NCBI RefSeq assembly: GCF_000315625.1
Contig: NW_005434567.1
Span: 143,515-207,514 of the forward strand
Length of the DNA stretch: 64,000 bases
Reading direction: 5' to 3'
Source: Guillardia theta CCMP2712
Lineage: Eukaryota; Protista; Cryptophyta
Numbering within the stretch: the first letter of the stretch is position 1; each line of letters opens with the position of its first letter. The position numbers were made by a program, and so were the translations under genes. The notes under the pieces were generated by a model. That model saw only the letters and a list, made by a program, of their open reading frames with translations. It was not told where the DNA came from and did not search any database. Below, in pieces: positions 26,823 through 32,953 of this stretch.

Positions 26823-29800
26823 TCAACTTGTAAAGAGACAGCACGTCCGAAAGTATGAAAAGGCAGAGGAGAAGAGGAGGAACAGCGGGACGGGGGAATG
26901 TGGAGGAAAGAAAGGGGGGTGATTGCTCCAAGGGAGGAGGACGAGGAGGAGGAGGAGGAGGATGAACATGCAGGAAATCATCATGGCCTCCACTTTCTTC
27001 TTCCCCTCTGCCATGTCAATCTCAGCAACAACGTCGGCAAAGAGCTCAAGTTACATGTGCTGTGTGATCATCATGACCTGCAGAGTTATGATCAGATCGA
27101 AACCTCCTCCCTCTTCTCCTGCTTCCTCCCTCGTTCCCTCGATACCTTCTCTTCCCCTTCCCTTCCCTCCCCTGTCACCTTCCCACCCTCCTCTCATCAC
27201 CCGGTCGTATTCTCCATCCCCCTCTCCCCTCCCCTCCTTCCTCTGGCATCCTCCTCTCCTCCATCTCCTCTCCCTTCCCCTCTCCCTGCATCCTCTTCCT
27301 CTCCTCTCACCTGTCGAAGTAGGCGAGCGGTGCGACGACTTGGCCTGCAAGAGGAGAGGAGCGGGTCAAGAGCGAGCATGCAGGACCTGAGCTCACCGAG
27401 GCGAAGGAGGGGATAAAGTGAGGGAGGTAGATGTGCGCGAATGACCTCGCCCCTTTCTTTGGAGGCTGCGAGAAACAAAACTGATGAGTCATGAGGGAGG
27501 AGGAGAGAGGAGAAAGAGTGATGGAGGAGGCAGAGGAGGGAAGAGGATGAGGACGGGGACGGGGACGGGGACGAGGACGAGGACGAGGACAACGGAGACT
27601 ATGGCAACAAGAAAGAGGCCGGAATATCATGATACGCCAAGTCACCTTGTCGCAGAAAACGGCAAAGACGCTCGATCCGGTGTCCAACACAACCTGAACG
27701 AGCAGGAGCAGGAGCAGGAGCAGGAAGAGATCAGTGAGATCATTCACTTGGGTGACCCTCCTCCTCCCCCATCCACTCCTCCTCCCTCCTCCTTCCTCTT
27801 GCTGCTCTTTTTCTTTTACTCCTCTCCTTGTCCTTCAAATCTTCACAATTTTTGCAATTATACTAGACCCAACCAACCCAATGCTTCCTCCTCCTCCTCC
27901 TCCTCCTCCTCCTCCTCCTCTGCCTCCCCCTCCCCCTCCTCCTTCCCCTCCTCTGCCTCCCCTTCCTCCTTCCTCCTTCCCCTTTTCCTCCTCCTCTTTC
28001 CCTTGCTCTATTCTTCTTCCTCCTCTGCTTCCTCACCTTCACTGTCTGTCGAGGAACACCTATCGAGACGTTGATGAAGATCTGCGTCTGCAAGCCTGTC
28101 TCGAGAGGAACCTTGTCGATCTCCCCAGAGGCTGGTAGGAGCTCTCAGGAGGAGGAAGAGGAGGAGGAAGAGGAGGAGGAAGAGGAGGAGGAAGAGGAGG
28201 AGGAGGAGGATGAGGAGGAGGAGGAGGAGGAGACATGTGACCTGTGTGCGATCCGTCGTCAAAACCCTCGGGTATCCCGAAATCCTGCAAAGAGGATGAG
28301 AAAGATAGGCAGGCAGTCAGAGGGGCAGCAGCAGCAGCAGCAGCAGCAGCAGCAGCAGCAGCAGCAGCAGCAGCAGCAGCAGCAGCAGCAGCAGCAGCAG
28401 CAGCAGCAGCAGCAGCAGCAGCAGCAGCAGCAGCAGCAGCAGCAGCAGCAGCAGCAGCAGCAGCAACCTCATGATGTTTTGGTTTGTGTTTCGCCCAATT
28501 GGAACCTGTTTGGACCATGTTACATCTCAGCGAGCTTCCAAACTTTCTTTTACCAGGACGAACAGGTTTGTACTGGCGATTTCTTTGCGCAAGGCCGATA
28601 ACAGGGACTGTTTGCAAGTTTTCAGAAGATGCAAGTTCTTGTGTTTGTCGAGGTGATGGTGGTTATGTTTCTTGTTGTTGTGGTTCTGGTTGTGTGCATT
28701 GTTATGCTTCTTGTTGAAGTTCTTTTTGTGTTTGTTGTTATGCTTCTTGTTATGCTTCTTGCGTGTTTTCTTACCTGTCGGGTGGGTGAGGTCGAAGTGA
28801 ACGACGAGGGCGCGGAAGATGACATCTCCGAGCTTTCGAGCAGTCAGAAGAAAAGGAGCCACGCAGTCAGATGTCACCAGAATGCCCATGAAGGCTGGGG
28901 GAGATGTCTGTCGGATAAGTCAGGACGAAGTGAGGAGGGGAANNNNNNNNNNNNNNNNNNNNNNNNNNNNNNNNNNNNNNNNNNNNNNNNNNNNNNNNNN
29001 NNNNNNNNNNNNNNNNNNNNNNNNNNNNNNNNNNNNNNNNNNATGTACCCTTCTTTAGCACTGTCACATCAAACGCTTCTCGCAAGCTCGATGTCACCAC
29101 AACTTCGCAAAGCCAACTCCCGCTCCCGCTAAAACTCAATAGCAAACCCGCCTTTCCAGGCGTTTTTCCTATTTAAGAAACGCTGAGGCAAAAAAAGATA
29201 TCCGGGCAGAGGAGGGGAGAGGAGGAGAGGAGAGGAGAGGAGAGGAGAGGAGAGGAGAGGAGAGGAGAGAAAAGGAGAGGAGCAGAGCAGAGGGGAGGAG
29301 AACGGGATAGGAAAGAAGATAAAGAGGAGGAACGAGCACAGCCGACGGGGCAAGAGAAATGAGGGAAGGAAACTACTTAGGAGAAGGAGCAGGAGCGAGC
29401 GACTGACCTGCACGCAAGGTCGACTGTCCTTGTCAAGCCACCTGCGAGTGAAAATCAGAGAAAGCAACCGAGGGAGGGAGAGAGAGAAGCGAGCAAGATG
29501 AAAGTGTTTGAGAGAAGCGAGAAGGAGAAGAGAGACGGAGGAAGAACAAGGAGAAAGAAAAATGGGGGAGAGGGGGGAGAAAGGGGGGAAGAGGAAGGGA
29601 GGGAGGAAGGGAGGGAGGAGGGGGAACGAAAAGGGAGCAAGACGCATGTAAGAGCAGGGAAAGGGAGACAAGAGGAGAGGAGAAGGGAAAAGAAAACAAG
29701 AGAAAAGAGGGAAAGTGATGAAGATATTCTATCGTTCGCATGTGCTGCTTGATACATCACAGTCGTCAAGTCCTGGCGCTCACCAATCCTCAAAGGGAAT

Positions 29801-32800: not shown

Positions 32801-32953
32801 TCACATTCTTCTGGAACGGGTCGTACGCCAGCAGCAAGCGGCTTCACAGAGCTAAGAAAACAGAGCCAGCAGACATTGCAAGAGCTACCTGTGCACAAGG
32901 AGCAGGAGCGCAGGGCAGAACTTGTGGCTCATTCCGAACGCACTAGTCACCAT
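26823..32953 (-). CDS. Pepsin-family (A1) aspartic protease, circularly permuted, about 20 exons
   Basis: Order from the 5' end: hydrophobic leader; FDLKYADTADLRGYIGQ|DIVQLG (GC-AG intron); FGCITKCDSADFNGVDGIL|GLG; FTFVVDREAGELQ|LGAYD; YSIPVTSIKFDG; GILD|SGTSCLVLP; PCVQ|TSPPAFMGIL|LGDVIFRALVVHFDL; PVIGLA; IFINVSIGVPRQTVK|VVLDTGSSVFAVFC. The terminal exons are uncertain. Confidence 0.85.
28326..28463. repeat. (CAG)46 uninterrupted microsatellite, in a predicted intron of the protease gene
   Basis: Counted directly: 138 bp. Confidence 0.95.
32121..32241. repeat. Intronic ~35-bp tandem repeat (AACTTCACGTAACATCTCCCCATGAAATCACATCG), about 3 copies
   Basis: Seen directly in the sequence. Confidence 0.8.

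Follow-up and report, generated by a model that had tools for sequence, protein, structure and literature searches.

Can a pepsin-type protease be encoded with the two ends of its fold exchanged? A 64,000-nucleotide stretch of the Guillardia theta CCMP2712 genome (the whole stretch is called the window here; label G000:C107:143515-207514, from a searched assembly of 87 Mb in 669 contigs) carries on its minus strand, between 33000 and 26800, a gene made of short exons separated by microsatellite-rich introns. We propose that the product of this gene is very probably an aspartic endopeptidase of the pepsin family (MEROPS A1) and a circular permutant that arose in nature. The canonical order of family A1, DTG loop, flap, DTG/DSG loop and C-terminal strand, is not the order of this product. 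After a leader, the chain begins at about pepsin residue 48, passes the flap (Tyr67) and what remains of the N-lobe, and continues with the entire C-lobe (Asp224-Ser-Gly), the PVIGLA strand and a linker. Last come the four strands that canonical enzymes make first, with Asp407-Thr-Gly, and this final segment is predicted to fold back into the N-lobe, so that the two catalytic loops would meet as in pepsin.

The protein, P0136, has 469 residues and was found by searching with a close relative; its sources are MMETSP Transcript_18407, UniRef100_A0A7S4N8N2 ("Peptidase A1 domain-containing protein, Guillardia theta") and JGI. Exact spliced mapping places 469 of 469 residues on the window minus strand at 100% identity, in 25 exons from 32953 to 26984. 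A 1,627-nt contig that encodes P0136 (L016, JGI sample 3300017164) matches the window exon by exon at 100% from 32981 to 26792 in blastn, the sole difference being one mismatch in the 219-nt last exon plus 3' untranslated region (UTR). The intron borders are GT..AG throughout with one exception, a GC donor at 32458. An in-frame stop lies 9 nt upstream of the ATG at 32953, the coding sequence ends in TGA TGA (26983-26978), and L016 starts only 28 nt upstream of the ATG, with no DTG exon ahead of it. Two assembly gaps, 31394-31493 in intron 8 (31645-30958) and 28943-29042 in intron 14 (29407-28908), are bridged by L016 with zero missing or extra bases. A family hidden Markov model (HMM) built from homologues is likewise colinear on stop-free minus-strand segments of the window, with its positions 84-111 at 32542-32459, 417-445 at 28120-28034 and 444-462 at 27696-27640; from 24000 to 36000 on this strand it detects no DTGS-type exon other than at 28120-27640. 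An exon at about 31245, guessed from homology only, was ruled out by the transcript, which puts exon 9 at 30957-30901.

Along P0136 the order is signal-like leader, flap Tyr67, D224-SGTS, LLGDVIF, PVIGLA, linker, and the N-terminal strands with D407-TGSS. The linker comprises the 44 residues between PVIGLA (328-333) and KVPLE (residue 378). D[TS]G[ST] occurs exactly twice, as DSGT at 224 and as DTGS at 407, and the flap Tyr is residue 67; thus the stretch from the start to the flap is free of Asp motifs. The Pfam Asp model (PF00026, cut-off 19.9 bits) matches the whole protein with 92.3 bits (E 5e-26), its positions 40-310 falling on residues 42-327, and when residues 330-420 are scanned alone, positions 3-28 fall on residues 390-415. 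In the intron-free paralog L002, residues 129-263 match pepsinogen 96-234, residues 371-398 match 343-368, and residues 444-481 match 44-81, the IGTPxQxFTVIFDTGS region (PDB sequences). An alignment of the junction with canonical A1 N-termini has 99.2% probability across the relocated segment (hhalign). In all, about 47 pepsin-fold residues, including one of the two catalytic aspartates, stand at the chain end, and the exchange of ends relative to the reference within one polypeptide that defines a circular permutant (PMC3320104) is seen in the sequence, in the transcript and in single paralog open reading frames (ORFs). Several other features of family A1 are present: one D-T/S-G loop per lobe (D224-S-G-T-S and D407-T-G-S-S), a flap hairpin in which invariant Tyr67 followed by A-D takes the place of Tyr75, the bilobal fold and the PF00026 profile.

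A preliminary description of this locus had put forward the permutation, and the transcript agrees with most of its particulars. All the motifs and exon borders that it gave recur in the spliced mapping of P0136, the borders 30553/30267 (ILD/SGTS), 28131-28037 and 27693-27646 (..TVK/VVLDTGSS..) exactly within 1 nt; its linker of about 45 residues measures 44, both gaps lie outside the two decisive stretches that it called gap-free, and no DTG or DSG stands between the start codon and the flap. It had called for a cDNA and for a Pfam match in reversed order: L016 joins the flap-to-IGLA body with the DTGSS exons, and model positions 40-310 do precede 3-28. The two findings that it named as fatal, an upstream DTG exon or a separate DTGSS transcript, are both absent from L016. 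Its gene span of 32953-27646 was correct at the start and too short at the end, where four more exons lead to 26984, and its figure of about 60 relocated residues has to be lowered to about 47.

Does the relocated segment return to its original place in the fold? Modelled by AlphaFold2 with 97 family sequences, P0136 has a mean predicted local distance difference test score (pLDDT) of 82.7 and a predicted template modelling score (pTM) of 0.81. The body (residues 40-340) scores 72-98, mostly 88-98, the linker (345-375) about 47-75, and the tail (436-466) below 50; the relocated segment (377-417) forms four strands at 88-97. Model residues 39-336 superpose on residues 48-326 of porcine pepsin 6xcy (VIA-align: Z 23.1, root-mean-square deviation 2.2, 258 residues aligned); the alignment starts at pepsin 48, and pepsin 1-47 therefore has no partner in sequence order. 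The top Foldseek matches are plasmepsin X, BACE1 and pepsin (E about 1e-11). When the body (39-340) and the segment (372-425) were docked as separate chains with ESMFold2, the score was 0.85, compared with 0.48 for the best of three controls; among solved complexes, 51 of 78 reach that mark, and among mismatched pairs 2 of 108. Separate runs have at least 94% of their contacts in common, with partner pLDDT of at least 80, and the lowest-error contacts are those expected of pepsin, between Ser225 and residue 223 of the DSG loop and Thr408 of the DTG loop. Contact between these two loops is the "fireman's grip" of A1 enzymes. In addition, the DGILG loop (109-112) contacts residues 404-407, and strand 160-162 pairs with the relocated first strand (378-379). 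The evidence for the original three-dimensional place is thus the pLDDT of the segment and the split-chain contacts, the superposition being in sequence order only. The paralog P0001 (from L002) folds likewise (pLDDT 81.3), with a confidently structured linker (pLDDT 78-97) and a long C-terminal helix consistent with a membrane anchor.

The same permuted order is found at no fewer than 17 other loci of the genome, many of them single intron-free ORFs. A genome scan with PF00026 yielded at least 14 loci at which positions ~40-308 are followed, 57-75 residues further on in the same open frame, by positions 1 to ~34, and a junction profile lies within one open frame at 10 loci and is spread over split exons at further loci, the window among them. 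The loci examined in detail are colinear with the permuted profile wherever both parts are detectable, none of them shows the canonical order, and no canonical-order A1 locus was found in the genome. A canonical cathepsin-D-like query gave only weak genome matches, all at loci with PF00026 matches; a genome search with TAXi_C gave none, but it gave none in control genomes either and is uninformative. The paralogs L002 (G000:C9:826264-827955), L004 (G000:C40) and L008 (G000:C59) are single ORFs of 462-593 residues with the same motif order; L002 and L004 start with a hydrophobic leader, and all three end in a hydrophobic helix.

Nor is the order confined to one species. Whenever both motifs are present, DSG precedes DTGS (144/144 retrieved homologues), with a spacing that is typically 176-185 residues (range 161-225). 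The named sources, several of them transcriptomes, are all cryptophytes (Guillardia, Hanusia, Rhodomonas, Hemiselmis, Baffinella and Teleaulax), and every named homologue has the order that the preliminary description had proposed to look for in this group. Against 1.84 billion cluster representatives, the junction profile matched 124 clusters (50% identity) at E<=1e-10, most of them as one stretch across the whole junction; most of the metagenomic matches carry no taxon name, and the statement on cryptophytes concerns the named homologues. Across 97 sequences there is no variation in the flap Tyr, DSG-S, DTGS or GD-F-R, nor in the glycines of DGILG, which argues for maintained catalysis. Structural look-alikes in the ESM Atlas were generic A1 clusters only and are uninformative on the permutation.

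Could the DTGSS exons instead begin a second, tandem A1 gene or a truncated domain, the permutation being an artefact of an unseen upstream DTG exon? A1 genes often stand in tandem, fused tandem A1 models exist in databases for animals (P0233, P0256, P0202, P0272) and for Cymbomonas (P0188), and the locus does contain two assembly gaps. Both gaps are intronic, however, and L016 by itself covers both parts of the protein from 28 nt before the ATG, which has an in-frame stop upstream; the minus strand offers no other DTGS-like exon from 24000 to 36000, the chain is over about 60 residues after DTGSS without a second flap or DSG, and the paralog ORFs run uninterrupted through the same order behind a signal peptide. 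We therefore consider this explanation exceedingly improbable. It is also very unlikely that the protein is a domain-swapped dimer, in which chains exchange their C-terminal DTGS segments and each active site is built from two polypeptides. Single-lobe retropepsins do act as dimers, the 44-residue linker of the window protein is long and of low confidence (pLDDT ~50), and the split-chain prediction indicates that the segment can dock as a separate chain; yet the monomer model with the segment in place reaches its pTM of 0.81, the linker of P0001 is structured (pLDDT 78-97), which fits an intramolecular connection, and nothing in the data requires a dimer.

A third possibility concerns function: the pepsin fold may have been kept in a protein that is not a protease but a binding or inhibitor-like protein, comparable to TAXI-I or the pregnancy-associated glycoproteins. 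The unusual flap and the replaced Trp39 described below would fit this, as would the loss of a D[TS]G motif in some members (e.g., P0219, P0240 and P0247). We find it unlikely, given that the window protein keeps both D-[TS]-G-[ST] loops, the flap Tyr and the DGILG loop, and that the catalytic motifs are invariant or nearly so in 97 diverse sequences, indicating selection on catalysis. A permuted A1 endopeptidase remains the reading that we prefer, and several points weigh against it. It draws on sequence, one transcript and structure prediction, the transcript basis being one assembled contig together with a word share in RNA-like runs. At the flap, all family members (alignments A1/A2) have Y-A-D where canonical A1 enzymes have Y-G-T/S, and the equivalent of pepsin Trp39 is Gly or Ala in DTGSSVFG(V/I)F and is not conserved; catalytic properties, specificity or pH behavior may consequently differ. 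The split-chain result may draw on memory of pepsin structures, and the test therefore supports the packing without proving it. The preliminary description had looked to a predicted structure for the meeting of the two aspartates: the pepsin-like fold with its packed C-terminal segment appeared as anticipated, while the meeting of Asp224 with Asp407 is seen through predicted contacts of neighboring residues. Finally, when the linker was compared with canonical prosegments, hhalign detected no similarity and aligned only the mature N-terminal part, and the prosegment-like motif K-[ILV]-P-x-x-K of many paralog linkers is missing from the window protein. The wider form of this motif, K-[ILVM]-[PSAQ]-x-x-[KR], occurs in 16 of 41 linkers as against 0.8 expected in shuffles, the 41 linkers being related to one another.

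How would such an enzyme be activated? The A1_Propeptide model does not match P0136 even at E<=10, and the leader ends about 15 residues before the first pepsin-aligned residue, so that no N-terminal prosegment of the kind known in family A1 is detectable. Since no N-terminal A1 propeptide was detected, it is reasonable to infer from the sequence that activation may differ from that of canonical A1 enzymes. The linker, a basic half followed by an acidic half in the window protein, joins the old C-terminus to the old N-terminus exactly where the zymogen prosegment attaches. Regulation may act through this linker, which might for instance be cut to leave an enzyme of two chains, and not through an N-terminal propeptide. 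The first strand of A1 prosegments reads K-V-P-L-x-K, of which the paralog motif is reminiscent. The linker may thus be what is left of a prosegment, with a part in regulation, an idea that the hhalign result and the absence of the motif from the window protein leave weakly supported. A bolder version is possible but doubtful: that cryptophytes wholly replaced the canonical pepsin-type protease by the permuted lineage, and that the linker, as the prosegment relic of a fused duplicate, still serves as an internal activation peptide that is cut to give a two-chain enzyme. If this were true, an internal activation peptide would be a zymogen mechanism not known from family A1.

By analogy with its relatives, the protein is probably an active protease with an acid optimum and sensitivity to pepstatin, working in the secretory or endolysosomal pathway. 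We infer that the window copy, because it has no membrane helix, is soluble and that most paralogs are type I membrane proteins like BACE1. We propose that the permutation would have arisen once, in a cryptophyte ancestor, most simply when a tandem duplicate was fused and trimmed at both ends, and would afterwards have spread into a family of about 20 paralogs in this genome, most with a C-terminal membrane anchor. Duplication, fusion and trimming are the standard route to circular permutation (PMC3320104). The cut point falls at about pepsin residues 45-48. In pepsin, these residues belong to the surface Cys45-Cys50 loop. Six tandem A1-A1 proteins (P0168, P0188, P0233, P0256, P0202 and P0272) were rejected as evolutionary intermediates. 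P0168 (JGI metagenome) and P0188 (Cymbomonas tetramitiformis KAK3284678.1) are canonical cathepsin-D-like proteins with two near-identical tandem halves (the P0168 copies read identically), and are for that reason most likely assembly or gene-model artefacts; both also score with a junction profile and could misdirect a hunt for intermediates of the permutation. The four others are animal gene models that resemble fused neighboring genes.

The window protein shares with pepsin A, chymosin, renin and cathepsin D (MEROPS A1A, PF00026) the bilobal fold, the two D-T/S-G loops, the flap Tyr, DGILGLG, ILGDVF(L/I)R and a secretory leader; pepsinogen, renin and chymosin are its best PDB sequence matches. 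It differs from pepsin in placing the equivalent of residues 1 to ~47 (the first strands and Asp32) after 326 by way of the 44-residue linker, in lacking a detectable N-terminal A1 propeptide, in its Y-A-D flap and in the absence of Trp39. BACE1 (memapsin 2) and plasmepsins X and V, to which the top Foldseek matches belong, are membrane-bound or secretory-pathway A1 enzymes. Most paralogs, among them L002, L004 and L008, appear to resemble BACE1 in being type I membrane proteins, with a helix near the C-terminus that leaves a short tail in the cytosol; BACE1, however, has the canonical order and an N-terminal propeptide, whereas in the permutants the membrane helix comes after the relocated DTGS segment, and the window protein has no such helix. 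Cathepsin D in its two-chain form consists of a light chain, residues 1-97, and a heavy chain, the rest. The A1 fold thus works there with the piece that bears Asp32 on a separate polypeptide, and the PDB light chains 1lya_A and 4obz_A match the relocated segment. The two chains of cathepsin D are a processed canonical chain, however, whereas in the window the gene itself encodes the small piece last.

Has a permuted catalytic fold been described in this family before? The preliminary description knew of no natural permutant, and full-text literature searches, with subscription journals outside their coverage, agree: they returned no permuted A1 catalytic domain, only the swaposin insert. Classically, a single circular permutation has been associated with aspartic proteases, that of swaposin, the plant-specific insert of phytepsins (PMC3320104), and the accessible part of a permutation survey from 2026 brings up aspartic proteases in no other connection (PMC13552848). 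In swaposin it is the inserted saposin-like domain that is permuted and not the catalytic fold, and the window protein has no such insert. We have high confidence that the permutation is real, and we found no published description of it in the pepsin family.

The features of the gene are collected in the table below.

Table. Coordinates of the protease gene in the window, from its 5' to its 3' end (aa, residues of P0136)
Feature	Coordinates	Strand	Basis
5' UTR	32954..32981	-	L016 bases 1-28, contiguous with genome
Exon 1, aa 1-21: start codon, hydrophobic signal-like leader	32889..32953	-	transcript; predicted helix 14-23
Exon 2, aa 22-51: leader end and new N-terminus of fold (YDPF..NSTDKF, from ~pepsin 48)	32754..32841	-	transcript; model residue 39 = pepsin 48
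Exon 3, aa 52-79: flap hairpin FDLKYAD, Tyr67 at 32497-32495; GC-AG intron follows	32459..32542	-	transcript, family HMM
Exon 4, aa 80-92 (DIVQLGHYYARTK)	32374..32412	-	transcript
Exon 5, aa 93-111 (DSADFNGVDGIL): part of DGILGLG loop packing on DTG loop	32255..32312	-	transcript; 109-112 contact 404-407
Exon 6, aa 112-135	31996..32066	-	transcript
Exon 7, aa 136-148	31734..31772	-	transcript
Exon 8, aa 149-161 (FTFVVDREAGELQ)	31646..31684	-	transcript
Intron 8, with gap 31394-31493	30958..31645	-	transcript joins 31646 to 30957
Exon 9, aa 162-180 (LGAYD..): strand pairing with relocated N-terminal strand	30901..30957	-	transcript; 160-162 contact 378-379
Exon 10, aa 181-199	30796..30853	-	transcript
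Exon 11, aa 200-224 (..GILD at its end): catalytic Asp of the C-lobe (Asp224, 30557-30555)	30553..30628	-	transcript; D224 invariant
Exon 12, aa 225-248 (SGTSCLVLP..)	30198..30267	-	transcript
Exon 13, aa 249-285	29784..29896	-	transcript
Exon 14, aa 286-297 (WLDKDSRPCVQ)	29408..29441	-	transcript
Intron 14, with gap 28943-29042	28908..29407	-	transcript joins 29408 to 28907
Exon 15, 30-nt micro-exon, aa 298-307 (TSPPAFMGIL)	28878..28907	-	transcript
Exon 16, aa 308-326 (LGDVIFRALVVHFDL): equivalent of pepsin ILGDVFLR	28775..28832	-	transcript, family HMM
Exon 17, aa 327-344: PVIGLA (old C-terminal strand), linker start	28554..28607	-	transcript; pepsin alignment ends at model 336 = pepsin 326
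Exon 18, aa 345-357: basic linker half	28468..28505	-	transcript; pLDDT ~50
Intron 18, with 141-nt CTG microsatellite 28325-28465	28285..28467	-	transcript
Exon 19, aa 358-371: acidic linker half	28242..28284	-	transcript
Exon 20, aa 372-403: relocated N-terminal strands (KVPLE..TQIFINVSIGVPRQTVK, ~pepsin 1-28)	28037..28131	-	transcript, HMM, Pfam, hhalign; pLDDT 88-97
Exon 21, aa 404-419 (VVLDTGSSVFAVFCDK); N-lobe catalytic Asp407 at 27684-27682	27646..27693	-	transcript; D407 T408 G409 S410 invariant; 408 contacts 225, 223
Exon 22, aa 420-442: tail, subfamily motif HIYLPHFIP	27397..27465	-	transcript
Exon 23, aa 443-453: tail, low confidence	27311..27344	-	transcript, model
Exon 24, aa 454-461	27055..27077	-	transcript
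Exon 25: aa 462-469 (27007-26984), stop TGA TGA, 3' UTR to at least 26792	26792..27007	-	transcript

The introns of the gene are full of trinucleotide and hexanucleotide repeats. The GC-AG intron between exons 3 and 4 (32413-32458, minus strand) is 46 nt long, is seen in L016 and has the sole non-GT donor. On the same strand, one frame stays open for 200 codons (28063-28662) across exon 17, the CTG repeat (about 47 Ala if read) and a CCT repeat; according to the transcript, the CTG and CCT stretches are introns. In the 3' UTR (about 26930-26990, minus strand), another frame after the stop reads as a Leu-rich run resembling a membrane helix (..MMISCMFILLLLLLVLLPW..), and the orthologues P0133, P0132 and P0128 of other species have a real C-terminal membrane helix. 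The run may be a product of chance, encoded by a CTC repeat, or it could stem from an anchor since lost or from alternative splicing.

Several paralogs are intron-free, in contrast to the 24 introns of the window copy, one of which flanks a 30-nt micro-exon. Three further loci, L011 (G000:C56), L012 (G000:C19) and L013 (G000:C9:1002500-1012499), have the pepsin-like body with no DTGS segment detectable within 5 kb on either side (E<=0.01) and may be degenerate or highly diverged copies. In P0141 (GUITHDRAFT_109483, G000:C39) the junction is about 23 residues shorter than in related proteins, and the first strand, DR(I/V)P, is absent; in this reference model, which looks truncated at the junction, an exon seems to have been mis-predicted, and a real deletion is less likely.

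Downstream of the protease gene and convergent with its 3' end lies a starch-synthase-like gene (22898-26441, plus strand; Glyco_transf_5 and Glycos_transf_1/GT1; at least 2 ORFs). Upstream are GC-rich repeats and, further on, a 1,520-residue ORF (44925-49484, minus strand) with at least 11 ephrin-receptor-like or TNFR-like cysteine-rich repeats (PF07699, E 4e-76). Neither neighbor suggests a functional link to the protease.

What does the permutant mean for the pepsin family? The family is among the most studied of enzyme folds and includes major drug targets, and its chain order has been treated as fixed. Here is a permutant that is conserved, expressed and lineage-wide, with an N-lobe, including one catalytic loop, that would be assembled from both chain ends. 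Because the attachment point of the prosegment is now internal, it offers a natural test case for folding and zymogen activation. Annotation by domains gives "Asp" plus a stray "TAXi_N" match in the permuted proteins; owing to this split and to at least one reference model that looks truncated, GUITHDRAFT_109483, surveys may mis-score these proteins as incomplete or inactive. Finally, the family would provide a worked example of permutation by duplication in a fold that itself arose by duplication.

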